Shown in pieces: positions 3,501 through 62,565 of a stretch of 64,000 bases of DNA. The stretch's first letter is position 1. Every line of letters begins with the position of its first letter. Below the pieces are notes generated by a model, which saw nothing but the letters and a program-made list of their open reading frames with translations, did no database searches and was not told where the DNA came from. Both the position numbers and the translations under genes were made by a program. The stretch lies in the sequence record PP496436.1; one strand, given 5' to 3'.

Positions 3501-5030
3501 TTAACTGATGCGGAACAGTCCGCCTTGAGCGAGTTCACGCACACGCGAGTTGCCCTTCTGAACAGGTTCATTCAGGAAGGATGCGGTGCTTACCTGGCGC
3601 AACGGGGTCTCGAGTTGGGTTTCCAGCTGCGCAGTAGAAGCCTGACGGCCAGTGCTGCGAGTCGAGGAGCCTACCGGAGTAGTGGACGCGATGGTTTCCG
3701 CCAGATCATTCAGGCTGCTCGGATCACGGGCTGCCAGTGTCTGAGCCAGCGCGAGGACGTTTTGGTTATGCTCGTCTTCGGTTTCGGCCAAAGCGCTCTC
3801 AACCATGGCTTGCGCGTTCTGTACACCGGCGGTGGTCAGATCGGCAATCAGGCGTTCCTTCACTTTGTGTGGGGTGTTGCGGAAGAACCCACGGGTCATA
3901 CCAGCTGTCGCCAGCTGAAGGCCATGCAGCAGTCGTTCGGTCTGATCGCCAACGGTGTCGGCGACTTCGGCGGCAGCGACAGCCTTAGCCTTTTCTTGCA
4001 CGAATGCCATCGCCATCGCGGCAGGGGCCTTGAAGCTGTTACGCTGGAAGCCGTAGCTAGCCAGAGTTGCGTCCAAGCCGTCCTTGTTGAACGTCTGGGC
4101 GATTGCTTCCATGTAAGCTGGCTCGCCGAAGATATCGGCGTTGGCGGTTTCTGCGGTTTTGTGCAGGACAGCCACGGTCTGATCGTTGACGTTAGCCAAG
4201 ATCTTGCCGTTCAGCGGGATGAATTCAGCAGTCGCGTTTTCACTCAGGCCAACCGAGGACAGCGCTTCGAGAACGTCGATGTTCATATCTTCGGGCTCGT
4301 CACATTGGTCGGGGTTCTGCGTGGACTGGATGACTTCGGCTTCTTCAACCGGTTCGTCGTCCGACTCCTCTTCTTCCTCGTCGTCAGCTTCGGCGGACGC
4401 AACCACCGGCTTCTGCTTCGGCATGATGATCATCGGATTGTCCTCGGCGGAAGCTTCTTCCTCCAAGTCCTCGTCAGATTCATTCGATTCGTCGTCTTCC
4501 AGTTCTTCGTCGTCGGCGCTGGTGTCGTCATCGCTTAGATCCGAATCGTCTTCCGACTCTTCTTCATCATCGGCGCTGGCTTCTTCGGCGGGTTGATCGC
4601 CGTCCCATGCCCAATCGGCGTTCGCATCTTCTTCGTCGGTGGCAGTGGTATCATCATCTGCACCAGCGAGAGTTACGTTGGGGTTCAGTACCATCCCCGT
4701 ACCACATTCAACACAGCAGATCTCTACGTGGCCTTCTTTGTTCACTGGCATTTGCGCCAGCTCTTCATCGAACATCACGTTAGCCACGGTGCACTGACGG
4801 CACTGCGCGCTGGTAAGGCTATCTTCTTCCGACTGGTTAAAGACGGAAGCAGTGATTGCCTCAGCACGCTGTTTCATGGCTGGACTGCCGCAGTGACCGC
4901 AGAACGGATCGCACCCCGCCAACGCTACCGTTTCCTCTTTGCAGTGACCGCACTGGTATGAAGCCAGTACAGCCTGCTTGAGGCTACGCATGGTTGGGGC
5001 GTGAGAAGCGATCATGGTGAGCTTCGGCAT
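3501..5030 (-). CDS. Putative prohead scaffold/core protein with Zn-ribbons and acidic linker
   Basis: Start MPKLTM at 5030 with SD GAGGAG; four CxxC pairs, long D/E tract, helical C-terminus; precedes decoration and MCP genes. Confidence 0.55.
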   Translation of the reverse strand: MPKLTMIASHAPTMRSLKQAVLASYQCGHCKEETVALAGCDPFCGHCGSPAMKQRAEAITASVFNQSEEDSLTSAQCRQCTVANVMFDEELAQMPVNKEGHVEICCVECGTGMVLNPNVTLAGADDDTTATDEEDANADWAWDGDQPAEEASADDEEESEDDSDLSDDDTSADDEELEDDESNESDEDLEEEASAEDNPMIIMPKQKPVVASAEADDEEEEESDDEPVEEAEVIQSTQNPDQCDEPEDMNIDVLEALSSVGLSENATAEFIPLNGKILANVNDQTVAVLHKTAETANADIFGEPAYMEAIAQTFNKDGLDATLASYGFQRNSFKAPAAMAMAFVQEKAKAVAAAEVADTVGDQTERLLHGLQLATAGMTRGFFRNTPHKVKERLIADLTTAGVQNAQAMVESALAETEDEHNQNVLALAQTLAARDPSSLNDLAETIASTTPVGSSTRSTGRQASTAQLETQLETPLRQVSTASFLNEPVQKGNSRVRELAQGGLFRIS

Positions 5031-5357
5031 GCGAAGTGCTCCTCTTGCTGTCAATGGGCTGCTACACACTATAAGCATGAGCAGATCTTCGAGCAGGCCA
5101 CCTCTACGGCCCCTGCTACGGTAAACTCGGATTCACCCCTCCACGCGTATATAACGTTTTGGGAACAATTCAAATTACATACGACCAGAGTGCCATGGTG
5201 TCCATACCTGCGTCAAAACGCCCGTTTGCCATCATGTCGGGATATGCCCAGCCATATGGGTGCTAAGTCATTGATTACCTTGACAATTTATTAGGGGGTA
5301 TGTGGCCCCCTAATTCATGGAAATTAAGGTATTTTGGCTATATCTGCGTCAAAGTGC

Positions 5358-6013: not shown

Positions 6014-8800
6014 TTAGGCAAAGTCTTTCTGTGCCAGCACCAGTGGAACGCCGACAGTATCCAGTGCTATCTGGGTGAACTCCTTCAATTCTGATCTGGT
6101 CAGCTTCCGGCTCAGCATCACCCCATCGTGCTCTTGTGCCACCACGATGTCTTTGTGTCGCATGTTGAACTCTATCATCACCGCTTGCTCCATACCGCAG
6201 GTGATGAAGTGCAGCAGCTTCGACTTCTCCTTTTGTGTCGTCCATCCATTCAGCAGCTTGTCCGTATAGAAGAATGCAACTGACCCTAGAGCATTGCGTA
6301 CGCTCACTGCGCTGGCCGTCGCGTTGTCTGGATCAAGTCCAGCATCCTTGATTGATCTGGACAGCGACTTGTACAGGAAGTAGTTCTGCTTGGCGATCAG
6401 GTCTCGATTGACCGGCAGCTTGACGTGTTCAGTTACCTTGTAGTAAGGGTGCGCAAGGATCATGCTGGGCAATGCCTGCATCGTCCTTATCACAGGAAAG
6501 ATCAACCGGTTGGTGGTGTAGATCAAAGCTATTGCCAGCTCCATCATCTTAATCTTGAGGGCTTGCACGTGGCTCTCGTTCAACTCCAGTTCAATCGGCG
6601 CAACAAGACCACGGATCAGTTTGTCGATGGTGTCGGGCACCACGGAAGATTTCAGGATGGACTCATGCGATGTCTTGAGGCTAGACCCGTACATGACGGA
6701 CAGGAACATCAGCTTGCAGACTCCGTCGATAACCTGGATGAACTCCTTCTCCTTGCGCCACGTCTGGCCGGGCGTTTCCCCTGCGCTTTTCCATACCTGA
6801 TGCAGCGCTAGTCGGTCATTCCATCTTGACTCGCTTCCAGACCACTTCGGTGCACCGTATACCCCAGCTCTCCATGGGTTCCGTACCATGACCAGCGCCG
6901 ACTCCAGCAGGCCTTTGAACCCGGAGTCCTCCATCTCAGTCAGCACATGATCCGTCCACGTCTTGGATTCGTACATTCCGAAGATGGTCAACGCGCTATC
7001 CACATCCCGGTCCGTGAGGAACACCTTGCCGTACTCGTCTATCGTCTCGACCAGTTCCTTGTGATATTTCTTGACCAGTCCGCCGATCAGCATCGGGTGG
7101 CAAGACTTGACGTCGTAGTTGACGTACCCACTCTTGGTGAGGATCACCTGCTTGAGTTGATTGGGCAGCGAACCGAAACCCACTGGAGAGTTTATCCGGG
7201 GCGAGCGCAAGGTGGTGAAGTGATGTGCACGGTGCATGACTATCTGGTTGTGGCGGTCGCTGCTCCCTTGCTGGCACCCCAAGTTCTCCGGATTGATCAT
7301 GCGGGCCAACGTGCGGAAGGCACCGGAGGATATGGCGTCACCCGAGGTGTGGTGCATCCAGCTCAGTTCCGCCAGCAGGTCGTTGACGGGTAAGCGTACA
7401 CTCTTGGTGGACAGCATGCGGATGTAGGCCTTTACGTTGACCGGTACAACTGGCCGGGTCGAAAGGTTTATGTTGTCACTGATCTCCTTGTACGTCGGGT
7501 TGTTCACCACACAAGACTGAACCATTGAGACTCGGCGCATCATCGTGCACGCCTTGATCGGCACCTTCTTGTCGTGGAACATGTATAGCTTGCCCGGCTG
7601 GCCGGTGAGGTTGTCGTTCGCCACCAGAGACTCGCCGTAGGGCAGCTGAGAACTGAATACCATTACGGCCTGCCCACGCTCGGCGAACGCATAGATCGCA
7701 TTGGGCAGTACCCGGTTGCTACCCTTCAGATTGGTCAGCCAGCGGCCCAACGGTTTCACGTCACGAGGCCGACCCATCAACCGCCCATGTAGGTAGGCGT
7801 CAACCTTATCCATGTACGAGTCAACGAACTGGGTGACCACGGGACCGGGTTCGAACGTGAACGTCTTGTGCTTCCAGTAGTCTGCCTCCGTGGTCACGGC
7901 CATCAGCCCCATGATCTCCAGCACAGCGCGCACGGTGTCCCAGTGATAAGACGTCTGACCCTTCTTCGATCCTTCGATGTTCCGCCAGTTGATCAGGTTG
8001 TTGAACCTCTTTTCACCTTGATGCGAGCCGAGCCCGTAGCCTTCCTTGACCTGATCCTTCTTGATCGCGAACTGGGTATCGTGGCTGTGATCCAGATCAA
8101 CATGCAGGAACCGGGATACAGACCGAGCATGGTTCAGTTCCATGGGGAACGCCAGCTTGTTGGTCAGGTCCTTGGGGTTGAACGCAGGGTTCCATTGAAA
8201 GCCGTCCTTCGAGGTTCCCTTGTGCACGGCGGACACCAGATGTCGGGCCATTGAGTCGCGGGAGTCGAAGTGGCCTTTGTCGTTCACCTTATCCAGCAGC
8301 ATGGGGTACGCCACGACAAGGCGAGCGATCAGGAAGGCAAAGCAGTAGGCAGCAGACGGGCCGGGCGCACAGTTGCGCTCCGCCATCTTCTGGAGGAATG
8401 TCTCGTACTGATCAAGGATGAAGTAGCCCAGACCGGGCGTGACGGCGACCGGCAGGCCAACGACGCGGCTGTCCAGCCAGCTCTTGCCACTGGGGTACAG
8501 GTTGTGCTTGGGATTCAGCGAAGGTTCAACCACCATCATCCGCACGTAGGGCACATGGGCCTGAACCCATTCAACGTTGGATTGGTCTTTGGCTTCGGGG
8601 AAGTCACGGGTAGCTTCACCCACCTTGGCGATGAGATCAGTATTGAACCGCCCTACATCCTTGACCTCGGGGGCCAGCGTAGGGTTCAACCGGGCGGTAG
8701 CCTTGATGATGGGTACTTGGTCATACACTGGATACAAGTCTAGGGGCTTGGACAGTATGCCTGCATATTCCTTTTCCGAGAGTGGGGTGTAATCAGCCAT
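6014..8800 (-). CDS. Large protein with C-terminal family-A-polymerase-like domain
   Basis: 928 aa; motif A-like 'YVNYDVKSCHPMLI', motif B-like 'KLMFLSVMYG', 'CGMEQAVM', motif C-like 'QEHDGVML'. No ExoI motif recognised. Confidence 0.5.
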   Translation of the reverse strand: MADYTPLSEKEYAGILSKPLDLYPVYDQVPIIKATARLNPTLAPEVKDVGRFNTDLIAKVGEATRDFPEAKDQSNVEWVQAHVPYVRMMVVEPSLNPKHNLYPSGKSWLDSRVVGLPVAVTPGLGYFILDQYETFLQKMAERNCAPGPSAAYCFAFLIARLVVAYPMLLDKVNDKGHFDSRDSMARHLVSAVHKGTSKDGFQWNPAFNPKDLTNKLAFPMELNHARSVSRFLHVDLDHSHDTQFAIKKDQVKEGYGLGSHQGEKRFNNLINWRNIEGSKKGQTSYHWDTVRAVLEIMGLMAVTTEADYWKHKTFTFEPGPVVTQFVDSYMDKVDAYLHGRLMGRPRDVKPLGRWLTNLKGSNRVLPNAIYAFAERGQAVMVFSSQLPYGESLVANDNLTGQPGKLYMFHDKKVPIKACTMMRRVSMVQSCVVNNPTYKEISDNINLSTRPVVPVNVKAYIRMLSTKSVRLPVNDLLAELSWMHHTSGDAISSGAFRTLARMINPENLGCQQGSSDRHNQIVMHRAHHFTTLRSPRINSPVGFGSLPNQLKQVILTKSGYVNYDVKSCHPMLIGGLVKKYHKELVETIDEYGKVFLTDRDVDSALTIFGMYESKTWTDHVLTEMEDSGFKGLLESALVMVRNPWRAGVYGAPKWSGSESRWNDRLALHQVWKSAGETPGQTWRKEKEFIQVIDGVCKLMFLSVMYGSSLKTSHESILKSSVVPDTIDKLIRGLVAPIELELNESHVQALKIKMMELAIALIYTTNRLIFPVIRTMQALPSMILAHPYYKVTEHVKLPVNRDLIAKQNYFLYKSLSRSIKDAGLDPDNATASAVSVRNALGSVAFFYTDKLLNGWTTQKEKSKLLHFITCGMEQAVMIEFNMRHKDIVVAQEHDGVMLSRKLTRSELKEFTQIALDTVGVPLVLAQKDFA

Positions 8801-9627
8801 TGGATAGCTCGCGTATTACCGGAGTGAATGGAATTGGACGTTATCAGCCCATTTACCAGACTATATACAGAGTATCTTATGGGGGTTAAAAAGGACCATC
8901 TTGCAATTATTTGGGTCATTAATTCCCTTTCATACCCTAAACCTCTATCTGTGAATACGGGGGTAGTTAGCCCTAGATACATCCCTATTACCTGTGTATA
9001 TTGCCCATGTAGACTCTATTCCCCTATCGGGAAGTATAACCTCGAAAAAGGTTCCTAGCTTGCATGGGCTGGCCCACCCACCCCCGTGGCCCACCCGACC
9101 GCCCGGTTAAGGCCATACCTAGGGATTCCTTTCTCCCAGAGGGACCCCCAGCCGCCCATCCTTCCCCTGCTCCTCCCTTTCCTTCATCATCTACACCCAC
9201 CCAGCTATTGACTTACCATCTAGTGATCCTCCTTCCTCCAGCTTCTACATAGGCAGTTAGTTTCCCCATGCCTCTAAGTCCCTACGCTTCATCATGCACT
9301 TATGCTCTGTAGTACTGATTCCCCCACATGCCCGTGACTTATGCTCTGGTGTCAGTATTCCCAGCCTCCCAGGTGAAAAGGGTGACCCGGCTTCCTGCTA
9401 TGGGTATGGGGTTGTCCGGGGAATAGCGCCCGTGAATAGGGCTTCCAGGCGTGCGATATGGGGAGTTTTTCGGGGATGGATGAGTCAGTATGGCGGGGAA
9501 TGGGGAATGTAGCGCCTGCGAGCTTGTAGGAGCCCGTGGTTATTGACTGGATATGCGGGACTGGGGCGGGGGTTTCCTGCGGAGGTGAAAAAGCCCGCAC
9601 GGCTTGGGACCGATACGGGCTCTGGTA
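8801..9627. other. Long non-coding region with C-rich to G-rich switch (candidate replication origin)
   Basis: No credible ORF; C-rich plus strand ~9060-9370, G-rich ~9380-9580; 12-bp direct repeat ACTTATGCTCTG at 9298 and 9337. Confidence 0.4.
9586..9622 (-). terminator. Intrinsic terminator ending the accessory gene block
   Basis: Minus strand GAGCCCGTAT...GTGCGGGCTTTTTCACC. Confidence 0.65.
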
Positions 9628-19998: not shown

Positions 19999-21477
19999 AT
20001 GAAATCTGTAGCCGTTGACTACCAAAAGATAGCCAAGGAATGCCAGTGTACCGAGCTGCCTTCTAAGGTAAGAGTTACGCGTGCACGGGTCTATCCAAAC
20101 TTGAGGACGTGCCTACTCTTCCTCAAGTACGATGCCAAAGGCGATCTGGTGCAAGCCGAGATCACTGCGCCGTACGACACTTCCACCGAGCCAAAGGTGC
20201 GTGTGCTCAAGCACCCGGACAAGAAGTCCGACTTCCTTTCATTATATAGAGCGCTGATCCGCCATCAGATCATACCCGAGTCTATTCCGAAGAAAGGTAA
20301 CGGGATTGCACCGACGCTGGAGGTAATCGGCACACTGGTGAGCCTGCTGCCGGAACGGGATGTCGAAACCTTCCGAACCCTGACCCCGGCCATCCAGACT
20401 GGCAGCGTCATGTACGTCCCTCTGGTTACGTCCCGGCCAATGCCCATGGTGCAACACTGGATACCCGTTGACCAGCATTCAGAGCTGGGCATGATCGAGC
20501 TGGTCGATACGGATAGCAAGCCTTTCCTTAATCAGTGGGTCAACAGGTTGAGCAACACCGCCACCGGTTATGTGATCTACACCCCGGAAGGCTCACACGG
20601 TCAGGAACTCGCCTGCTTCCGTGTGCCCAATGTGCAAGGAGAGGAACTGTGCGTGGTCAAGAAGGTGGACTTCACCCTTACCGTTGCTCGCACCCTCAAG
20701 CCGGTACTGACCGTCTCCACCAAGAGTACGCGTGCCGTATCCCGCATTCCCCTACCCCACTATCTGATGCTGCGCAATCACCACATCAAGGTTGGCACGG
20801 TTATTTCCCTGCGGCGTAACGACCGAGGTGGGTTGGTGTACCATGAGACGGTGGCAGAGGAAGGGATGACACCTCTGCCACTGTGCCCACATTGCCATAG
20901 TGGATCTGTGCTGCGAAGTAGTAGCAATGACGTGTACTGCAATAACGATTCATGCCGAGGCCTAGCCATCGTGCGACTTCGCTACATCTTGAACAACAAG
21001 CTGGACGTCAAGTACCTGAGTCAGAACAAGGTGACGGCGTTGGTCAACGACAAGCAGGACCTGTTCAGCTTGCTCAAGACACCGACTCACCTATTGCGGC
21101 ACAGAGCGGGCTTCGGTGCACGTACGGTGGATGCGCTGGAAGAGAAGCTGAACACTATCGCCGGTCTTCCACTGCACACGCTGGCCGAGATGTCCTGCGC
21201 TTTCTACAACGTGGGTGTGCCCCCGCTGGATGAGATGGTGTTCAAGAAGATCTTTTCCGTGATGTCGCTTGACCACCTGAAAGCACTGCCCTCCACCGGT
21301 AAGATGTACAGCCAGTTGCTCGACATCGAAGGTATCCGCAACAACCGCGCAGTGGCTTTCCTCGCTGGTTGGCCTGCATTTCAACAGTGGATGATAGATC
21401 TTAACGCTGCCCTACAGTCTCGTAGCGCAATCTCCTCCACGGTAAATAACCCGAAACAAATTCGAGGTGTTAAATGA
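19999..21477 (+). CDS. ligA: NAD-dependent DNA ligase-like protein, degenerate adenylation motif
   Basis: OB-like 'LKPV...HHIKVGTVISLRR', Zn finger 'CPHC...YCNNDSC', HhH 'GFGARTV' and 'LLDIEGI'; motif I reads YPNLRT instead of EPKLDG; no BRCT. Confidence 0.65.
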   Translation: MKSVAVDYQKIAKECQCTELPSKVRVTRARVYPNLRTCLLFLKYDAKGDLVQAEITAPYDTSTEPKVRVLKHPDKKSDFLSLYRALIRHQIIPESIPKKGNGIAPTLEVIGTLVSLLPERDVETFRTLTPAIQTGSVMYVPLVTSRPMPMVQHWIPVDQHSELGMIELVDTDSKPFLNQWVNRLSNTATGYVIYTPEGSHGQELACFRVPNVQGEELCVVKKVDFTLTVARTLKPVLTVSTKSTRAVSRIPLPHYLMLRNHHIKVGTVISLRRNDRGGLVYHETVAEEGMTPLPLCPHCHSGSVLRSSSNDVYCNNDSCRGLAIVRLRYILNNKLDVKYLSQNKVTALVNDKQDLFSLLKTPTHLLRHRAGFGARTVDALEEKLNTIAGLPLHTLAEMSCAFYNVGVPPLDEMVFKKIFSVMSLDHLKALPSTGKMYSQLLDIEGIRNNRAVAFLAGWPAFQQWMIDLNAALQSRSAISSTVNNPKQIRGVK

Positions 21478-22238
21478 ACAATCAAAACAGAACTCGTATC
21501 GCTGTGCTTGTCGGCGGCGGTCTGGACTCACATGCGTACATGGTATTGAAAGCCGACCAGCCTCAGACAGACTTCATTCATGTGGACTACGGCCAGCGGG
21601 TTGCAGTAGCCGAGAGAAACGCCGTGTTGCAAATGGCTGAGAAGCTGGGCATTGCCCGCAGCCGGGTGTACACGCTGATCTGCAACAAGAAGAATCACAT
21701 GCGCAAGGTCAATGACGGTGTGGGTGTGTTGTTTGGCACCGGCCCGGTCGAGATGGACAATGCGTTTGTTAAGGGGCGTAACCTGTTCCTGATTCAGAAG
21801 GCCATCGAGCTGGGCTACGGTCACGTGCACCTGACGCTGACCCAAGAGCGTGGCCGGATGTTCCCCGATGCCGATCTGGCATTCGTCCAGCTGGTGGACA
21901 ACCTGATGCACCGCAGTTATGACGTGAGGGTGTCCGCACCCTACATCATGGAAGACAAACACCGGGTGATGTTCAAGGCGTATCGGCACTGTCCCGAGTT
22001 CATCGATATGTCTTTCACGTGCTGGGTAGGTCCTTATGTGGAATGCGGAACGTGCCCGCACTGCTACAAGAAGGAAAAGATTCGAGCCGAGATGATCGTT
22101 GAGAAGATTGAATACGATCTCAGCAAGGATGAACGTGAGGCGCAGTGGGAGCAAGTCAAGGCAGGCTACGGCGACGCGTTGAAGCCCGCTGAGACCATCA
22201 ACATGAACATTCAGGTTGTTGACGGGGAAATGAAATGA
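21474..22238 (+). CDS. queC: QueC-like protein (copy 1)
   Basis: 'VLVGGGLDS' PP-loop, 'VDYGQR', 'FVKGRN', 'FPDA', 'FTCW...CGTCPHC'. Confidence 0.85.
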   Translation: MNNQNRTRIAVLVGGGLDSHAYMVLKADQPQTDFIHVDYGQRVAVAERNAVLQMAEKLGIARSRVYTLICNKKNHMRKVNDGVGVLFGTGPVEMDNAFVKGRNLFLIQKAIELGYGHVHLTLTQERGRMFPDADLAFVQLVDNLMHRSYDVRVSAPYIMEDKHRVMFKAYRHCPEFIDMSFTCWVGPYVECGTCPHCYKKEKIRAEMIVEKIEYDLSKDEREAQWEQVKAGYGDALKPAETINMNIQVVDGEMK

Positions 22239-23034: not shown

Positions 23035-23853
23035 ATGACCACTACACCCCCGAAGATTCTTGTCGCATTCAGCGCTGGCACAGATTCAACCACTGCGGCC
23101 TACTACTATCGCAAGCTCGGCTATCAGGTAACGCTGGCCGTGTTCGATGACGGCGCATGCAACGATCCGCTTGACCCTCTGTACGATCCGAACAAGCCGA
23201 AGGACTTGACCAACTTCTCGGATGAGTTCTACGATTACGTACGGATTCACCAAGAGCATACGGAAGGTCATCTGCAGTTCGACTTCGTGGAGATTCGTTA
23301 TCCGCAACTCGCATTGCTGGAAGCCAATAAGACGGCCAAGCCCGGTCGGGACAATGCGGCAGCAGCAGAGGCTGACGGCTTGGGCTTCTGGGTCGGCTTC
23401 AAGGGCCTGATGGCAATGTTGCTGATGAGCCACGGCGCCGCCAATGGTTACGAGGCAGTAGTCTTCGGCCACATGCCGTACAACAACCATTACGAAGATG
23501 AGCTGCCCCAGAACTTCGAGCTGCTGCGTCAGTACATGGTTACGGCCTATGGCAGCCGAGTGGAAATTCCTCAGATCTACCACCCGTTCTATCGACCTAA
23601 TTTCGATACCAAGGAAAAGGTTATTGAGCTGGCGCAGGCAATCGGCGTGCCCTTGCGAGATACCTATTCGTGCCGCCGAGGTGAAGTAGAAACCCGAGGC
23701 ATCCTCCTGCCACTTCTGCGTGGCGGTAAATCCAACTACGTGAGCCCCACCTACCGCTGGAAGCATTGCGGTACGTGTGAGAACTGTGTCGAACGCAAGC
23801 GAGCCTTCGCGGCGCTGGGCATGAAAGATCCTGCCCCTTATATGGAACATTGA
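23035..23853 (+). CDS. queC: QueC-like protein (copy 2, more divergent)
   Basis: 'VAFSAGTDS' PP-loop, 'TYSC', 'HCGTCENCVERKRAF' Zn cluster. Confidence 0.75.
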   Translation: MTTTPPKILVAFSAGTDSTTAAYYYRKLGYQVTLAVFDDGACNDPLDPLYDPNKPKDLTNFSDEFYDYVRIHQEHTEGHLQFDFVEIRYPQLALLEANKTAKPGRDNAAAAEADGLGFWVGFKGLMAMLLMSHGAANGYEAVVFGHMPYNNHYEDELPQNFELLRQYMVTAYGSRVEIPQIYHPFYRPNFDTKEKVIELAQAIGVPLRDTYSCRRGEVETRGILLPLLRGGKSNYVSPTYRWKHCGTCENCVERKRAFAALGMKDPAPYMEH

Positions 23854-50673: not shown

Positions 50674-51332
50674 ATATATTCTTCGTCCACGCTGATCCTG
50701 TTATTGCCGCAAGCATGCTCTGCGACCAGCATGTGACCAAGATGATCACCGAGTCAATCCAGATGCTGTGTACGGCGCACCGATGGTTCGGTAACGAAGA
50801 TATGCCGTATGCCTCGATGAACCCGAACCATCGGTGCAACATCTGGGTCCGGGAGTCCACTGAGAACTATCGGTGGTTATGGCGGCACGCCCATGCGCTG
50901 GCGCTGGTGGCAGCGTCCCGATACGGGGCTGTACGCTCGCAGGCGGTGACTTTGTTGTCCCGACTGATCGATGCCCCGGCTGGCGTCGATCGCGGCGCCT
51001 TGACGATCCCAGCGGCTGCTATAAGTGAGCCGCCCGGTTCCCCAATCCCACCGGAGTACTTGCAAGCATGGCGGGAGAGTGTGGTGTGCTTCGAGTCTGC
51101 CGTCGTTGCTTATCGCCAATTCTATATTCAACAGAAGTCGACATTCGCACGCTGGTCTGGATCGGCACCCGCATGGTATATCCAAGGTTTGCGGCAGTAC
51201 AGACTTATGCACCGACTTCGTGAACGAGACCCTAAGCTACCGTGGCCGCGAGGTATGACTAAACCCGATACCCGTCTGCAGTTCCGGTCGCACCCTACCC
51301 TAAGTGATTGGAGGCACTTCCCTAATGAATAA
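50670..51332 (+). CDS. Pyrimidine-dimer DNA glycosylase/endonuclease V family protein
   Basis: 'MNIFFVHADPVIAASMLCDQHVTKMITESIQML', 'NHRCNIWVRES..NYRWL', 'YRQFY'. Confidence 0.8.
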   Translation: MNIFFVHADPVIAASMLCDQHVTKMITESIQMLCTAHRWFGNEDMPYASMNPNHRCNIWVRESTENYRWLWRHAHALALVAASRYGAVRSQAVTLLSRLIDAPAGVDRGALTIPAAAISEPPGSPIPPEYLQAWRESVVCFESAVVAYRQFYIQQKSTFARWSGSAPAWYIQGLRQYRLMHRLRERDPKLPWPRGMTKPDTRLQFRSHPTLSDWRHFPNE

Positions 51333-51343
51333 GAGGATCTTGT

Positions 51344-51669: not shown

Positions 51670-51742
51670 CGTCTCCACCATTCACTTTCGCTCTGGTAAA
51701 TAGCACGCATGAAAGTCCCCGTTTTTGAAGAGGGTAACCTGT

Positions 51743-54700
51743 GTGTTAATATCCAGAGCGTCATTAGAGAAGTTTGATTTCGGAAGTCTGTTTGATGATC
51801 ACGTCAACAACGTCGGCAAACCGTACAAGGTACAGTCAGTAAGATCCACCGATTGGTTCCAGTCCAAGGAACGTCTGCTGGTGATCATGGGTCGTCCCAA
51901 CTACCGGGATGCCAAAGACGAAGTGCGCTGCATGATGGGCGCAGATGAAACCCGCATGGTGTTCGATAACCTGCTGGACTTGGCTGCGTCCAACGCTGAG
52001 GTTTATGCGAAGAAGGCGGGAATCAAGCTACGGTCCCGTAACAAGCACGCGATCATGGTCACCAATTTCCAGATTGCTGACCTGAGTTCCGCGTCGGAGG
52101 AAACAGAGTCCATCGCCAACCACGCAGCGGCGAATCGCGTCTCCATGCTGATCCACGTTACCCGGCCCACCAAGGTATTGATCGTCGGGCTGTACGCCGA
52201 GTCGTACCTGATGGAACGCTCGGGCATCGAGTACCCGGCCAAGAAGCGCGGCAACCCGCATCAGGTTGAGTTCAAGGTTGAGTTCAAGCCCAACGAAAAA
52301 GAACTCAAGCGCATGCAGTCACTGGAAAAGATGCGCTCTAAGGCTTTGGTACGGGAACTGGAGAGCAACGAGTATCACCCATGGGTAAACTTCTTCCTTG
52401 AGGAAGTGGCGCACGAAGGTGCCAAGCTGGCTGACTTCGCCAAGAAGGGTGGCACGTACTCGCTGAGCAACACGGTCCAGACGTTCTCCACTATCGACTA
52501 TGACCGGGCGTTCACCAGTGGTTCCGGCGAGAGCGACCTCGATGATGACGCGGTGGTAGAAGCCAACCTGCTCGGGTACGTGAGCCGGAACATCGCTAAC
52601 TGCCTGCTGGGCTGCAATCCATTCAGCCTGCGTCATCTGTTCAGTGAGAGGCAACCGTCCGGGCCAAAGGGTAAGCCCACGATTCAGTGCCACTATGTCG
52701 ATACGCTGAAGAAGTTCGACACCCTGTGGGATAAAGTGATGGAAGCTGACCTGGTGTCCCTCGACGTTGAGACGACCGGCTTCTACCCGCACACTAACCG
52801 GTTGCTGTCACTTCAGGTAGCCACTCGTAAGGAGGAAGGTTTCTTCGTCCCGCTCTATCACAAGGACACCCCGTTCACCAAGAAGGAACTGGAGCACATC
52901 CGTCTGCGCGTCAAAGCGTTGCTGGAACTCAAGGTTACCTATCACAAGAACCAGCGCCGCAAGCGCATGATGCTCGGCCAGAACTTCGGCTTCGACAAGA
53001 AGTGGCTGATGCACTGGTGCGACGTACGCTATCTGTACTGGCCGGTGTGGGACACTATCGCCGGTGAGTTCTGCCTCGACGACAACCTCAAGGGTCTGGT
53101 GGGTAAAGCCCTCGGCTACAAGTACACCCCGTTCTCGTTGGACTCCATTGTGGCGTCGTACGAGAACTACCACTATTTGGAATCGGAGTTCGGTAAGGAA
53201 GATCGGACGACCATTGAACATGTCAAGTTTGGTCCAGGTGAACCAGTGGTAACCTATGGTTGCATGGACGTTGTCTTCCCCATCGCCGCCATGGAACAGC
53301 AACTGAACCGTGCAGAGTGTGAGCACTGGCCGACCGGTAACTACCGAGACACCATGTTCAACTTCATGCTGGCCCAGATGTCGAACATGATCAAGGTGCA
53401 GTCGGGTATGTCGCACCGAGGCATCATGATGGACCAAGGTTACATGGAGTTCCAGCTGAGCGAAGAAGGTGTGTTTGCCAAGGACGTGGAACGCCTGACC
53501 CGCGAGTTGTACGCGTCCAAGAACGTGAAGAAAGCATCCGAGATGCTCAGGGGAAAGAAAGGTATCCCTCAAGGTTCCCTGTTCGGTAATGCGGGTGGTG
53601 ACGCTGCGGGCTTCAACCACGCCAAGCAGGAACACTTGGAGATCCTCTTCTTCGACGTGCTCAAGCTGGCACCGGTCAACGTCAAGAAGGAGACCGATAA
53701 GCGCTCGCTGGACGATGACTTCAAGAAGGCGTACAAAGCCGTACCAGAGGTTGCGTGCTGGGCGCAGATGGGTAAGATGCAGCGGTTGCTCGATACGTTC
53801 ATTCGCGCCATCTACAACCACATGAACAACGACCCAGACTATTCGGTGCACAACAGGCTCCATCCCGGCTACGGGTTCAAGGAGGTTGTGACCGGTCGAT
53901 CCAACAGTAGCAAGCCGTCGCTCCAGCAGATCCCGGTGCACAGTGCCGAGGCCAAGTACGTCAAGCGGCAGTTCGTGGCCCCGATGTGGACCTTGTTCGA
54001 TGACGCTGACTATAGCTCTCACGAGGTTCGCTGCGCGGGTATCACGGCGTTCGACGAAGCTTCATGCTCGGGCTTCCGCAAGATTCACAACATCGTACTG
54101 GATCACAGGCTGTATCCATCGAAGGACAACAAGATCGTCCTGCTCACAGCGGGCGACAGTCACAAGCAGAACTACTCCCGCTTCACCGGTCTGGATATCA
54201 AGGAGTGGATCACCTTCGACTTGACCGAGGAAGGCAAGAAGAAGGCAAAGGCACTGCGACAAATCGCCAAGACCATCGTGTTCGGTGCGATCTATGGTAA
54301 GTCAGCCCCGTCGCTGGCGGCAGAGCTGGGTATCAGCGTCGAGGAAGCCGAAGAACTGCTGTTCAACTTCTTCAAGGAGTTCGCGGACCTCAAGGACTGG
54401 CTGGAGTGGACCAAAGACTATTCCAACAAGCACTTGTACACCTTCGGCCCCCACGGTCGCAAGCGCCGTCTGTTCGGCTACATCACCGGCATCAAGCGTA
54501 CCCAGTCTGCGATGGAACGTCGTGCGCAGAACTCACCAATTCAAGGCTTCGCATCGGACGTTATGTTCGACGCCGCCGAGATGTATGCGCAAAAGCAGCA
54601 TGAGGTGTACGCACTGATAGAAGCCAACCGTAGCCTGCGCAAGATGCTGAGCAAGGAGCTGGAGATCGTCAATCAGTTCCCGACCGGCGCCAACGTTCTG

Positions 54701-55144
54701 GTGCACGACTCCAGCAAGTCAGAGTCGCCGTTCAACTTCCTGCTGATGAACATGCACATCAAAGAGTGGTGTATGACCACGGGCGTCCAGAACTATCTGG
54801 AATCCAACTTCGACATGCAGTTCTTGACCCCGTTCGGTATCGACTTCGACATCGGCGCATCGTGGGCAGACATGGAAGGCTGGGACTTCAACCCGACCAC
54901 CCTGATCGGACCTCAGCCCAAGGACAAAGACGGCAAGCCGGGTATGGGCATCATCGAGACGGCACTGGAGAACAGCCAGAAGATTCACAACTACTCGTTC
55001 AACACCGACAAGGTGGCGCAGGGTATGTTCACCAGCTACCACATGCTGCGAGACGAGCTGAAGCTGGATGAACTCTTCCCGTTGAACATGAAGTACTGCG
55101 TGGACAAGGACTGGCAGGTGCCTACCCCGAAACTTCCAAAGTGA
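51743..55144 (+). CDS. polA: Family A DNA polymerase with N-terminal UDG-like domain and 3'-5' exonuclease
   Basis: GTG start with SD GAGGG (TTG 51725 is an alternative); ExoI 'LDVETTG', 'GQNFGFD'; 'TGRSNSSKPSLQQIP', motif A 'DADYSSHEVR', motif B 'RQIAKTIVFGAIYG', motif C 'VHDS'. Confidence 0.95.
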   Translation: MLISRASLEKFDFGSLFDDHVNNVGKPYKVQSVRSTDWFQSKERLLVIMGRPNYRDAKDEVRCMMGADETRMVFDNLLDLAASNAEVYAKKAGIKLRSRNKHAIMVTNFQIADLSSASEETESIANHAAANRVSMLIHVTRPTKVLIVGLYAESYLMERSGIEYPAKKRGNPHQVEFKVEFKPNEKELKRMQSLEKMRSKALVRELESNEYHPWVNFFLEEVAHEGAKLADFAKKGGTYSLSNTVQTFSTIDYDRAFTSGSGESDLDDDAVVEANLLGYVSRNIANCLLGCNPFSLRHLFSERQPSGPKGKPTIQCHYVDTLKKFDTLWDKVMEADLVSLDVETTGFYPHTNRLLSLQVATRKEEGFFVPLYHKDTPFTKKELEHIRLRVKALLELKVTYHKNQRRKRMMLGQNFGFDKKWLMHWCDVRYLYWPVWDTIAGEFCLDDNLKGLVGKALGYKYTPFSLDSIVASYENYHYLESEFGKEDRTTIEHVKFGPGEPVVTYGCMDVVFPIAAMEQQLNRAECEHWPTGNYRDTMFNFMLAQMSNMIKVQSGMSHRGIMMDQGYMEFQLSEEGVFAKDVERLTRELYASKNVKKASEMLRGKKGIPQGSLFGNAGGDAAGFNHAKQEHLEILFFDVLKLAPVNVKKETDKRSLDDDFKKAYKAVPEVACWAQMGKMQRLLDTFIRAIYNHMNNDPDYSVHNRLHPGYGFKEVVTGRSNSSKPSLQQIPVHSAEAKYVKRQFVAPMWTLFDDADYSSHEVRCAGITAFDEASCSGFRKIHNIVLDHRLYPSKDNKIVLLTAGDSHKQNYSRFTGLDIKEWITFDLTEEGKKKAKALRQIAKTIVFGAIYGKSAPSLAAELGISVEEAEELLFNFFKEFADLKDWLEWTKDYSNKHLYTFGPHGRKRRLFGYITGIKRTQSAMERRAQNSPIQGFASDVMFDAAEMYAQKQHEVYALIEANRSLRKMLSKELEIVNQFPTGANVLVHDSSKSESPFNFLLMNMHIKEWCMTTGVQNYLESNFDMQFLTPFGIDFDIGASWADMEGWDFNPTTLIGPQPKDKDGKPGMGIIETALENSQKIHNYSFNTDKVAQGMFTSYHMLRDELKLDELFPLNMKYCVDKDWQVPTPKLPK

Positions 55145-55778: not shown

Positions 55779-56750
55779 ATGAAAGATATGCGCTATACCG
55801 AACTGTTCTATTCCCTCCAAGGTGAGGGTTTACGCGTTGGAGTGCCGTCGGTATTCTTCCGCATGTTCGGTTGCAACTTCGAGTGCAAGGGATTCTCCAA
55901 TCCTGAAATGAAAGACCCCAACGTGATCCCGGCAATAAATCTGCTGTCGATCAACGAAGCTGACCTGGAGCTAGGTTGTGACTCTCGTTACAGCTGGCAC
56001 AAGGACTATCGCAACCTGGCTATCAAAGCTGCACCTCATGAGGTGGCCAACACCCTGATCGACTTCACGAAAGAGAAGCACCGGGCGGCGGTGGCTCGCT
56101 GGCCCAAGCGTAACCGTGCAGGCAATGTCGTCCGTTTGATCCCCGGCCAGACTACGAGTGAACTACTCCAGATTGCCACGATGGCTCATGTGCCTGACTG
56201 GGTCTTCACCGGCGGTGAACCGTTCATGCAGCAAGAGCAACTCGAAGCCCTGCTGCGGCACACCATGTACGTGGTGGATGAAGAACAGGTGGAGTTCGGC
56301 GGCAATGGACTTCCTATGTTGACCTTCGAGACTAACGCCAGCATCAAGATGCGTGACTCTATGGTTAGCTGCCTGCGTGAGTACAATGACAACTTCGGGG
56401 ACTTGCACTTCTCCAACAGCCCCAAGCTGTCGTTCACCGGAGAGCATCGCAGTGCGGCGCTCAAGCCCGAAGTTATCGGCCAGCAAGAGCAAACGGGTGG
56501 ATCCAGTTCTTTCAAGTTCGTGGTACGCCCCGCACGTGAAGACTTCGATGAGCTGATGGAGTTCATGCAAGAGTACATGTCGTACACCGGATCGGGCAAT
56601 CTGGAAGGCATTTACGTCATGCCGGTCGGTGCCAGCCTACATCAACAGCAGGCCATCGCCACACAGGTTGCCGAGCTGGCACTGGAATACGGCCTGTCCT
56701 ACAGCCCCCGACTCCAGTGTGACCTGTGGGCCAACAAGATAGGGACGTGA
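55779..56750 (+). CDS. queE: 7-carboxy-7-deazaguanine synthase (radical SAM)
   Basis: 'ELFYSLQGEG...PSVFFRMFGCNFEC...GCDSRYSW', 'FTGGEP', 'FETNA', 'SPKL', 'SPRLQ'. Confidence 0.88.
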   Translation: MKDMRYTELFYSLQGEGLRVGVPSVFFRMFGCNFECKGFSNPEMKDPNVIPAINLLSINEADLELGCDSRYSWHKDYRNLAIKAAPHEVANTLIDFTKEKHRAAVARWPKRNRAGNVVRLIPGQTTSELLQIATMAHVPDWVFTGGEPFMQQEQLEALLRHTMYVVDEEQVEFGGNGLPMLTFETNASIKMRDSMVSCLREYNDNFGDLHFSNSPKLSFTGEHRSAALKPEVIGQQEQTGGSSSFKFVVRPAREDFDELMEFMQEYMSYTGSGNLEGIYVMPVGASLHQQQAIATQVAELALEYGLSYSPRLQCDLWANKIGT

Positions 56751-58718: not shown

Positions 58719-59459
58719 ATGGCTATTGATGCACATAAGTATCCGTTGTTGGCGGCGGCTCAAGACCGACTCATCGAGTCTGGTCAGCGCTATTTTGCGA
58801 ATGACAATATCCATCCGGTATTTGAATACCTGGACAACATGGCATTGCCTATGCCAGTCGGGGCTCAGACACTGGAGCAGATGAAGGAGGCTGTTCAAGA
58901 GAAGTACGGCGAGCTGCTGGAACTCCTCTTGATCGATTGGGCTGCGGATCATAACTCCGAAGGTACCCCGCGCCGTGTCGCCAAGATGCTGGTCGAGGAA
59001 ACCTACAAGGGTCGCTATCAGCCGACGCCGAAGATCACCGCGTTCCCCAACGACAGCAAGCGTACCCAGATGATCGTGATCGGGCCGCTGCGCGTTGAGA
59101 GCCAGTGCAGCCATCACCATCAGAACATCCGGGGCTGGGCATGGGTCGGTGTTATGCCGTCGGAAGATGGTACACTGATCGGTCTGTCGAAGTTCAGCCG
59201 CCTACTTGATCATATCTGCCGCCGTCCTCAGATCCAAGAGGAAATGGTTGCTCAGGTGTGTCACCAGTTGAACGATCTGGTCAAGGACAACCTCGGTGTC
59301 GCGGTCGTGATCAACGCAGAGCACCAGTGCATGGCCGTTCGGGGCGTGCAAGAGCCGTGTGCCCAAACCGTTACGTCGGAGATGCTGGGTGCGTTCCTCG
59401 AACCTGGTGTTCGTCAGGAGTTCCTGACCTACGTGCAAATGAACCCAGCCCCGTGCTAA
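58719..59459 (+). CDS. folE: GTP cyclohydrolase I
   Basis: 'TPRRVAKM', 'SQCSHH', 'GLSKFSR', 'RRPQIQE', 'HQCMAVRGV'. Confidence 0.95.
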   Translation: MAIDAHKYPLLAAAQDRLIESGQRYFANDNIHPVFEYLDNMALPMPVGAQTLEQMKEAVQEKYGELLELLLIDWAADHNSEGTPRRVAKMLVEETYKGRYQPTPKITAFPNDSKRTQMIVIGPLRVESQCSHHHQNIRGWAWVGVMPSEDGTLIGLSKFSRLLDHICRRPQIQEEMVAQVCHQLNDLVKDNLGVAVVINAEHQCMAVRGVQEPCAQTVTSEMLGAFLEPGVRQEFLTYVQMNPAPC

Positions 59460-61917: not shown

Positions 61918-62565
61918 ATGGCCGTCAATAGCAGTATGATCAAACTCCCCAAGATGGGGAGTGTCACGTTCAAGAAGATGCAAGCGGTCAACGTGCCGAT
62001 CCATCGTCTGGCCCAATCCAACATTCAGTTCAACTTGCGAGAGAACTTGCAGGAAGATGTGTTTGTTGAACGCAACAAGGCCAAGGAAGTAAAAGACATC
62101 GTTCGCCACACTGCTGCGTCTCAACTCCGGGCGTGGCAGTTGCTGATGCAAGAACCCTTTGGTGAACCGTACAGCATGTGCGTGTCCACCTACGAGTCCG
62201 ATTTCCTGCCCAAGATGGTAGCTGCCACACTGGTTGCTGCTGCCTTCGATCAGGGCGCCACTGTCAATCAGGTGGCTTGGCACACGATCACCGGGGACGC
62301 GGTTGACTACATGTTGGTAGATCATCACGCCCGGAAGAAAGATCTGAAGCTGATCGTGCTTGCCAACCTGCCAACGTCCTACGATCACACGACCCGGATG
62401 GACAGCTCTTTGCTGAAGTATGAGAAGGTGCGGGACATCATCGAGGTGTTCCCCAACGCGGCAGTGTGCGTGGTATCAACAGGCACCAGCCCGTCGGACC
62501 TGTTTCATAAACTTCAACTTCCTCTGGACATCGCCATCCGCCTGATGGATAAGAGACAACTATGA
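61918..62565 (+). CDS. Putative helicase loader (degenerate DnaC-like)
   Basis: 215 aa directly coupled to dnaB; 'LIVLANL', 'VCVVST' strands resemble AAA+ core but no Walker A. Mostly positional. Confidence 0.35.
   Translation: MAVNSSMIKLPKMGSVTFKKMQAVNVPIHRLAQSNIQFNLRENLQEDVFVERNKAKEVKDIVRHTAASQLRAWQLLMQEPFGEPYSMCVSTYESDFLPKMVAATLVAAAFDQGATVNQVAWHTITGDAVDYMLVDHHARKKDLKLIVLANLPTSYDHTTRMDSSLLKYEKVRDIIEVFPNAAVCVVSTGTSPSDLFHKLQLPLDIAIRLMDKRQL

Follow-up and report, generated by a model that had tools for sequence, protein, structure and literature searches.

Two groups of enzymes come closest in kind to the protein analysed here: the TV-Pol family, described as transposon-virus polymerases (Iyer, Abhiman and Aravind 2008, PMC2579912), and the CcPol-MP or PolA-SSB primases of SCCmec and Firmicute mobile elements, in which an A-family core can start chains de novo (bioRxiv 10.1101/2022.12.02.518924). 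We analysed the last 64 kb of record PP496436.1 (201,178 bp), the genome of Pseudomonas phage vB_PpuM-Illi-2, and this whole stretch is called the window below. Illi-2 is a myovirus of P. putida from Estonia and a member of jumbo cluster G3 of the CEPEST collection (PMC7616413). The gene of interest is Illi2_00162, annotated as coding for a 'hypothetical protein', and its identity was found by a translated search of the phage collection. Our results indicate that the C-terminal part of its product very probably forms an exonuclease-less, TV-Pol-like polymerase core of family A. We also lean towards regarding the protein as a catalytically intact nucleotidyl-transferase of the family A superfamily without proofreading, which would act as an accessory, DNA-templated enzyme and most likely as a low-fidelity primase-polymerase.

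The evidence for the polymerase core passes through a family of unannotated proteins of 525-618 amino acids (aa) that are encoded at the equivalent locus of related jumbo phages. According to the major head protein, the nearest phages outside G3 are the Vibrio phages GR7B and GR11A (54% identity), followed by phiRSL1 and by the Erwinia and Dickeya jumbo phages. In GR7B, a hypothetical protein of 618 aa, GR7B_00126, is encoded between the helicase and the RNase H and head genes, and a long non-coding gap precedes its gene as it does Illi2_00162. Comparison of the two proteins by BLASTP was not significant, although the stretches N-Y-D-(I/V)-x-S, E-H-D-G and the C-terminal K-(P/D)-F-A line up. 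GR7B_00126 matches hypothetical proteins of 525-560 aa from Erwinia Alexandra-, Sasquatch- and Yoloswag-viruses, from the Dickeya Salmondvirus and from Yersinia phage fHe-Yen9-02, with E values down to 4e-6, and a profile search added about 25 further clusters, all of them unannotated and devoid of Pfam domains. The gene is kept at one syntenic locus across distant phage genera, whose hosts are Pseudomonas, Vibrio, Erwinia, Dickeya and Yersinia.

We tested the membership of the Illi-2 protein with a profile of 34 proteins of this jumbo-phage family, from which its own family was left out, run against a database of 1003 sequences including 1000 shuffled copies. The Illi-2 protein scored 20.6 bits (E 8e-6) and the allele of Peetri, the ninth G3 phage (1010 aa, 31% identity to Illi2_00162), scored 26.4 bits (E 1.5e-7), while the best shuffled copy reached 3.2 bits. 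The match in the Illi-2 protein consists of two collinear blocks, aa 541-579, which hold motif A and the residues before it, and aa 845-899, which hold a hairpin, a G-M-E block and motif C. Two non-overlapping hhalign matches fell on the same two blocks (E 0.0018 for the motif A block and 0.0015 for the motif C block). When the G3 proteins were added to the family alignment with mafft --add, every motif block aligned, including motif B and the C-terminal K-x-F, and a language-model search placed one unnamed phage cluster of 507 aa nearest to both the Illi-2 protein (0.93) and GR7B_00126 (0.97). At the level of sequence statistics, membership of the GR7B_00126 family is established.

The family in turn matched the A-family DNA polymerases. 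A profile of nine family sequences compared with all PDB sequences gave DNA polymerase gamma as its 14 best matches (E 3.5e-4), exactly on the O-helix that carries motif B, and the motif B of the family profile matched both Pol gamma and T7 DNA polymerase. We also prepared an alignment of 10 polymerase-domain sequences, made up of T7 gp5, the PolA of the phage itself and IMG/VR relatives. The hhalign comparison of the family with this PolA alignment gave an E value of 1.8e-4; the 136 matched columns begin behind motif A, take in motif B and end at the Q-G-x-A block. The family with the Illi-2 protein included gave 3.6e-4 over 158 columns. In a greedy alignment, the T-G-R hairpin, motif A, motif B, the Q-G block and motif C were collinear. 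Comparison by hhalign with a nine-sequence alignment of T7-like RNA polymerases was not significant (E 0.33, 0.23 and 0.059-0.15, with 0.059-0.23 for the family), with a correct topology. By these profile scores, the family matches A-family DNA polymerases better than T7-like RNA polymerases.

Structure and language-model searches pointed in the same direction. Three kinds of neighbour were found for the ESM Atlas model of GR7B_00126 (pTM 0.68): unnamed clusters from phages and bacteria, 418-706 aa long; Preplasmiviricota proteins with a fused D5_N/DUF5906 helicase; and clusters that carry DNA_pol_A (TM 0.4-0.5). Among the 100 named clusters nearest to the C-terminal half of the Illi-2 protein in the language-model search, 83 carry DNA_pol_A. 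In the VIA structural search, 11 of the top 27 entries were family A DNA polymerases or single-subunit RNA polymerases, with 195-239 residues aligned within aa 513-928: Pol nu, Klenow, N4 RNAPII, M. smegmatis Pol1, T7 RNA polymerase, Aquifex Pol1 and apPol, and further T7 DNA polymerase, Pol theta and the human and yeast mitochondrial RNA polymerases. We take this enrichment as a lead and not as proof.

The gene and the parts of its product are located as follows.

6014 to 8800, minus strand: whole coding sequence of Illi2_00162, an ATG-to-stop open reading frame of 928 aa plus stop (GenBank annotation; dN/dS about 0.04)
7511 to 8800, minus strand: N-terminal region, aa 1-430, with no family match and AlphaFold pLDDT mostly below 40
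7205 to 7510, minus strand: helical segment before the predicted polymerase core, aa 431-532 (secondary structure of a low-confidence model; position relative to the Arg hairpin)
7082 to 7204, minus strand: predicted Arg hairpin and motif A, aa 533-573 (hmmsearch domain 1; hhalign, E as above; mafft --add)
6677 to 6718, minus strand: predicted motif B (O-helix), aa 695-708, C-K696-L-M-F-L-S-V-M-Y704-G-S-S-L (alignments with Peetri and the family)
6116 to 6295, minus strand: predicted hairpin, G-M-E block and motif C, aa 836-895 (hmmsearch domain 2; hhalign, E as above)
6017 to 6028, minus strand: C-terminal K-D-F-A-COOH; K-(D/P)-F stands at or near the C-terminus across the family

A preliminary description of this stretch, made from its letters and open reading frames, had proposed an open reading frame at 6014-8800 coding for a family-A-polymerase-like protein, and had quoted four motifs. 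The reading frame is that of the annotated gene, and all four motifs were found in the order given: SLPNQLKQVIL...GYVNYDVKSCHPMLI at aa 544-573, KLMFLSVMYG at aa 696-705, GMEQAV at aa 869-874 and EHDGVML at aa 890-896. They are judged to be more than chance resemblances because they fall in the blocks best conserved between Illi-2 and Peetri and align block for block with an independent family of phage proteins. The fold proposed for the C-terminal 400 or so residues, family-A-polymerase-like and without an exonuclease, gained support from the bridging family, from its matches to Pol gamma and PolA, from the structure and language-model neighbours and from the enrichment in the VIA search.

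In the first block, R535 is followed by G-F-x-S-L-P...L-K-Q, the counterpart of the PolA stretch T-G-R-L-S-S..P-N-L-Q-N-I-P, and falls in the alignments on the Arg that is invariant in the family (G-G-R-L-F) and on the T-G-R of PolA. Motif A reads V-N-Y-D563-V-K-S-C-H568-P. The predicted fingers between motifs A and B span about 130 aa (133) in Illi-2 and about 200 aa in Peetri, and motif B retains K696 and Y704-G705. The last block starts with a beta-hairpin, N-A-x-G, continues with H864-F-I-T-C-G-M-E-Q-A, the counterpart of Q-G-T-A-A-D in PolA, and ends with Q-E-H891-D892-G. D563 and H891-D892 are kept in both G3 alleles and align with the invariant Asp residues of the family, whose 30-member alignment shows, among sequences about 20% identical, an invariant hairpin Arg, both Asp, the Lys of motif B, a Tyr at K+4, and the G-x-E and E-x-D-G blocks. 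The segment aa 431-532 may be thumb-like, to judge from the low-confidence model. The N-terminal region shares conserved blocks with Peetri, among them aa 105-133, 253-266 and 366-387, but could not be aligned with the N-terminal parts of the GR7B_00126 family.

Comparison of Illi2_00162 with the allele of phage Amme-1 showed 156 synonymous and 21 non-synonymous differences along the whole length (the dN/dS listed above), and alleles 97.6-99.9% identical to it occur in seven sister phages of G3. This is the pattern of a functional gene under strong purifying selection.

Searches with the Illi-2 protein itself gave little. Neither the protein nor its halves nor its relatives had a match in Pfam, PHROGs, NCBIfam or PADLOC; phmmer and searches with the profile of its own family gave nothing relevant among the PDB sequences; Pfam RNA_pol (PF00940) did not match it, and no exonuclease domain was detected in it with Pfam. 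The N-terminus was thus as unrecognised, and the exonuclease as absent, as the preliminary description had stated. A word-indexed search among 5.8 billion protein clusters found nothing beyond its own near-identical cluster, an exhaustive HMMER search of 1.8 billion cluster representatives returned that cluster and Peetri only, and a pattern scan of IMG/VR found no relative.

The phage has a complete replication machinery elsewhere in its genome. Its own PolA, which had also been called complete from the letters, lies in an open reading frame at window positions 51725-55144 (GenBank start at 51887). It carries DNA_pol_A (E 3e-38) and a match to a 3'-5' exonuclease domain (E 1.2e-4, 22.4 bits) just under the Pfam cutoff of 23.6 bits, so that the call was confirmed. 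The idea that Illi2_00162 is a recent paralogue of this gene was dropped, since the two show no pairwise similarity. It had also been remarked that the window holds no DnaG-type primase. This is literally true, but the argument for a priming enzyme drawn from it fails as an artefact of the window, because a Toprim-type primase lies outside it (record 87357-88475) and the genome also has a DnaB-like helicase, at the window's end. A sigma factor, a clamp loader, a single-stranded DNA-binding protein (SSB) and UvsX are likewise encoded outside the window.

Two side observations concern these genes. An open reading frame of 215 aa directly before the DnaB-like helicase (window 61918-62565, plus strand) is annotated 'DNA polymerase'; it has no Pfam match and the annotation is putative. 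Two QueC-like genes, a QueE-like radical-SAM gene and a GTP cyclohydrolase gene are annotated at window positions 21474-22238, 23035-23853, 55779-56750 and 58719-59459, and GR7B likewise has a 7-cyano-7-deazaguanine synthase; because of these genes, the phage DNA is probably modified with a 7-deazaguanine derivative.

Illi2_00162 lies between the helicase and RNase H genes and the head genes, with small hypothetical genes and head genes as its neighbours. The gene downstream is on the opposite strand. Upstream, a gene of 96 aa without a Pfam match is separated from it by 827 nucleotides (nt) and a terminator-like hairpin. In the same region, Illi2_00160 (window 3501-5078, minus strand) is annotated 'ATPase'; it has no Pfam domain, and the sole support for its name is a PHROG match named ATPase. 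With a Cys-rich N-terminus, a run of about 100 aa of Asp and Glu, and a position directly before the head genes, its product looks more like a scaffold or head-core protein than like an ATPase.

The locus is a hotspot of divergence. The DNA on either side of it is 75-93% identical in Illi-2 and Peetri, and their major head proteins are 97.8% identical, whereas the proteins encoded by Illi2_00162 and its Peetri allele are only 31% identical, and the gene and about 440 nt before it are not alignable at the DNA level. In the Erwinia Alexandraviruses, alleles at one locus of one genus are 20-25% identical; there, a different gene follows the locus in each allele class (167, 174 or about 342 aa). 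Since selection within an allele class is strongly purifying, the pattern is that of a swap of old, deeply divergent alleles and not of ongoing rapid change. A BLAST segment had suggested that a recombination boundary lies within the 3' end of Illi2_00162. This was rejected: the last 201 nt are only 70% identical and code for the most conserved part of the protein.

The DNA before the gene, a gap of 827 nt without an annotated gene (8801-9627), comprises the following parts.

8801 to 9238, minus strand: proximal non-coding DNA, unalignable between Illi-2 and Peetri and changing with the allele; AT-rich beside the ATG, with weak sigma70-like sites
8935 to 9026, minus strand: cluster of four direct TAGGG repeats, at -226, -187, -175 and -139 from the ATG
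9239 to 9627, minus strand: distal non-coding DNA, 89.5% identical between Illi-2 and Peetri, starting with the terminator-like hairpin of the upstream gene

The TAGGG cluster is the densest in the 64-kb window (Poisson probability 6.6e-6 per 250-nt window, about 2e-3 after correction), and Peetri has five such repeats at -150 to -28 from the ATG. The only other cluster in 164 kb of the genome has four copies at 51230-51320 on the minus strand, including the tandem TAGGGTAGGG; it sits in an unannotated stretch of about 670 nt (window 50674-51343) before Illi2_00222 and the PolA gene. Regulator sites, iterons and chance are not distinguished by the sequence as explanations of these repeats. The proposal that 8801-9627 is an origin fared poorly: the gap gave no Rfam match, no skew signal and only weak repeats, although the TAGGG cluster is present in both alleles. 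A structured RNA in the gap was dropped because Rfam gave no match, and a hidden small protein-coding partner because tblastx showed no preferred frame. GR7B has a gene-free gap of about 750 nt before its polymerase-like gene (L015:6690-7439) and a second gap of about 800 nt after RNase H (L015:10146-10951), where the G3 phages carry Illi2_00162 and its alleles, and phages with this locus may have long non-coding leaders in common.

We favour, by a slight tilt of the evidence, the accessory primase-polymerase named at the outset. Such a protein would have a right-hand polymerase core at about aa 533-928 behind a large, lineage-specific N-terminal region. It would not be the replicase; it may start or restart DNA synthesis at particular sites, to which its N-terminal region and the allele-specific DNA upstream of the gene may guide it. 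The suggestion of priming, at an origin or elsewhere, is drawn from the analogy with TV-Pol and CcPol, from the place of the gene in a block of replication genes and from the allele-varying upstream DNA, which recalls modules made of an initiator and its origin. The residue five positions after the Asp of motif A is the steric-gate Glu in PolA enzymes. As this Glu is replaced in the Illi-2 protein, its sugar selectivity may be relaxed.

Several results weigh against this interpretation. The Illi-2 protein alone reaches no polymerase: DNA_pol_A (PF00476) did not match it, its halves or the Peetri protein even at E values up to 10, and the profile of the Illi-2 protein and its own relatives compared with the PolA alignment gave an E value of 0.31. 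The link therefore rests on the intermediate family, and each step of the chain from the protein to the family and from the family to PolA has an E value of about 1e-4 to 1e-7 and not better. With a profile of 30 sequences, mostly Erwinia alleles, the Pol gamma matches dropped to an E value of about 1.5. The AlphaFold models, made from three-sequence alignments, were poor (pLDDT 43.5 for the whole protein, 49.8 for its C-terminal half), Foldseek found nothing significant in the PDB for either of them, and the VIA scores on such a poor model (Z 5.0-7.0) lie in the stated noise range of that tool.

The active site also departs from that of PolA. Motif B of PolA reads R-x-x-x-K-x-x-x-F/Y-x-x-x-Y-G. 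The Arg expected four residues before K696 is absent, being an Asp in Illi-2 and a Gln in Peetri, while some members of the family retain R-x-x-x-K. The residue at K+4 is L700 and not an aromatic one, whereas a Tyr, Y704, is present at K+8. The steric-gate position is occupied by His568 in Illi-2 and by a His in Peetri and is an invariant Gln in the family, an equivalence that is based on spacing only, and a Gly follows the Asp of motif C in place of the Glu of PolA. The nucleotide pocket, as read from these alignments, is remodelled; with the steric-gate Glu replaced and the Arg of RxxxK absent, sugar selectivity and efficiency are not readable from the sequence. Beyond the active site, the need for priming is not evident in a phage that already has a primase, an allele divergence as extreme as that of this locus is unusual for a core replication enzyme, and no small SSB or OB-fold partner and no D5-like helicase beside the gene are evident from annotation and Pfam.

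The departures from PolA raise the question of whether the protein is active at all. The resemblance of the motifs could be a relic or due to chance, and the protein could be structural or regulatory; the missing RxxxK Arg, K+4 aromatic residue, steric-gate Glu and Glu after the motif C Asp, the lack of a direct significant match of the protein to a polymerase and the position of the gene next to the head and tail gene block would all agree with this. However, both Asp, the hairpin Arg, the O-helix Lys and the Tyr that follows it are invariant in 30 family members that share about 20% identity, the two G3 alleles have all of these residues except the Tyr at K+4, and the blocks with the catalytic residues are the best-conserved parts of the protein. 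We consider an inactive protein very improbable. It is quite unlikely, if a little less so, that the protein is a single-subunit DNA-dependent RNA polymerase of the T7, N4 or mitochondrial type that would transcribe a few phage genes or make primer RNA at the neighbouring non-coding region. Its length of 928 aa and the spacing of its motifs are like those of T7 RNA polymerase, with a D/N-x-x-G/T-R candidate for the T/DxxGR motif (N-L-S-T-R449 in Illi-2 and D-L-S-G-R470 in Peetri) 114-115 aa before motif A, as against 112 in T7; K-x7-Y-G-S, H-D and a C-terminal F-A-COOH are present, and the steric-gate Glu of DNA polymerases is absent. POLRMT and T7 RNA polymerase, followed by the palm of HIV reverse transcriptase, stood at the top of the non-significant Foldseek list for the full-length model, and N4 RNAPII, T7 RNA polymerase and the mitochondrial enzymes were among the VIA matches. 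An identification from this spacing was nevertheless dropped, since in the alignments the conserved Arg is R535 and not R449, at a PolA-like distance of 28 aa from motif A, and since hhalign gave E values of 0.06-0.33 for RNA polymerases versus 2-4e-4 for PolA. The RNA polymerase option of the preliminary description is weaker for that reason. It is weakened further by neighbours, in the language-model and structure searches, that carry DNA_pol_A and not RNA_pol, by the sigma factor of the phage, which suggests use of the host RNA polymerase, and by a count of exact words in 164 kb of the genome, in which no promoter-like word of at least 12 bases recurred once low-complexity coding runs were set aside, though degenerate or few promoters would be missed in this way.

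The divergence of the locus bears on two other explanations. A polymerase-like enzyme could serve in competition between phage and host or between phages, as a counter-defence, in the exclusion of rivals or as a selfish replicating cassette with its own cis site, and we regard such a conflict gene as unlikely, though less so than the other alternatives considered here. The contrast between the protein and its flanks, the same pattern in the Alexandraviruses and the proximal upstream DNA that changes with the allele all fit it. So does the only bacterial member of the family that was found, a protein of 571 aa from Desulfobacula sp. (P0029; JAQYWD010000037.1, L068:10001-11716): its gene follows a DUF5131 gene, a tyrosine integrase gene (Phage_integrase) lies 1 kb further on, and the island also holds HTH, HATPase_c_3, SLFN_AlbA_2 and PDDEXK_4 genes. 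P. putida prophages strongly restrict G3 phages (PMC7616413). On the other side, PADLOC gave no match, and the phage copies have no gene for an integrase, transposase or homing endonuclease next to them. Retention of one syntenic locus by distant genera suggests that the role of the gene in the phage life cycle is conserved, and purifying selection within the allele class is strong. Moreover, replication-initiation modules can show the same mosaic pattern. It is somewhat more doubtful that the family forms a new functional class of A-family enzymes with a remodelled nucleotide pocket, in which each allele and its TAGGG-bearing upstream DNA would make up a specificity cassette. The cassette could be an allele-specific module for priming or the start of replication, or else the enzyme could synthesise a nucleic acid that is not genomic, be it RNA, a mixed polymer or an untemplated product, for use in conflict between phage and host or between phages. 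Both versions would explain why this is the most divergent locus of otherwise near-identical jumbo phages.

If the assignment to the A-family polymerases is right, a clade of jumbo phages on Pseudomonas, Vibrio, Erwinia, Dickeya and Yersinia has a complete replisome and, in addition, a second A-family polymerase that is unannotated, and the known range of the PolA/TV-Pol superfamily is widened. A branch without residues thought to be important for dNTP binding and sugar selection, in which the catalytic Asp residues are kept, would be a natural test of the minimal A-family active site, and more than 30 'hypothetical proteins' would gain a name that can be tested. That the alleles differ so extremely while their locus stays fixed points to a role in specificity or conflict, which current phage annotation misses altogether. 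In pEa_SNUABM_5, the allele is annotated 'putative helicase', a label that is probably wrong. The practical value is modest until activity is shown.

Comparison with canonical family A enzymes (Pol I, T7 gp5 and Pol gamma; PF00476) shows the same order of a T-G-R-like hairpin, the Asp of motif A, K...Y-G of the O-helix, a Q-G-x-A-A-like block and H-D. The Illi-2 protein differs from them by the lack of a Pfam match and of an exonuclease domain, by a stretch between motifs A and B that is about 80 aa longer (133 versus about 50 aa) and by the change of the steric-gate Glu to His, the loss of the RxxxK Arg and the change of the Glu after the catalytic Asp to Gly. With the T7-like RNA polymerases (PF00940), it shares the superfamily, a similar length, K-x7-Y-G-S, H-D and the hydrophobic F-A C-terminus, and it differs from them in having no significant profile match, a conserved Arg at PolA-like spacing and no promoter-like repeats in the genome. 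An A-family core without proofreading is common to the Illi-2 protein and the CcPol primases, but CcPol needs a small OB-fold partner encoded immediately downstream and a helicase in the operon, and lacks a long N-terminal region.

The nearest described kind is TV-Pol/CcPol, the TV-Pol likeness being judged by the published description and not by reference sequences, and the suggestion of TV-Pol-type relatives in the preliminary description is upheld to that extent. The Illi-2 protein differs from TV-Pol in that no D5-like helicase, integrase, resolvase or transposase is encoded beside the phage copies, in that it and the Peetri protein keep only the Lys (K696) of the RxxxK finger motif, and in that its N-terminal region of about 430 aa is not predicted to be purely helical. 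The likenesses are more numerous. Both have a minimal family-A-like core with no fused or neighbouring nuclease domain (PMC2579912), a conserved Arg hairpin before the palm (R535 here) and two catalytic Asp, and both are found in phages or mobile elements that already own a replicase. A subset of TV-Pol has an uncharacterised N-terminal domain, and the position of the Desulfobacula gene beside a tyrosine integrase is the context of that subset (PMC2579912). The structural neighbours of GR7B_00126 include fusions to D5_N helicases, which is the architecture of the Sputnik-type TV-Pol.

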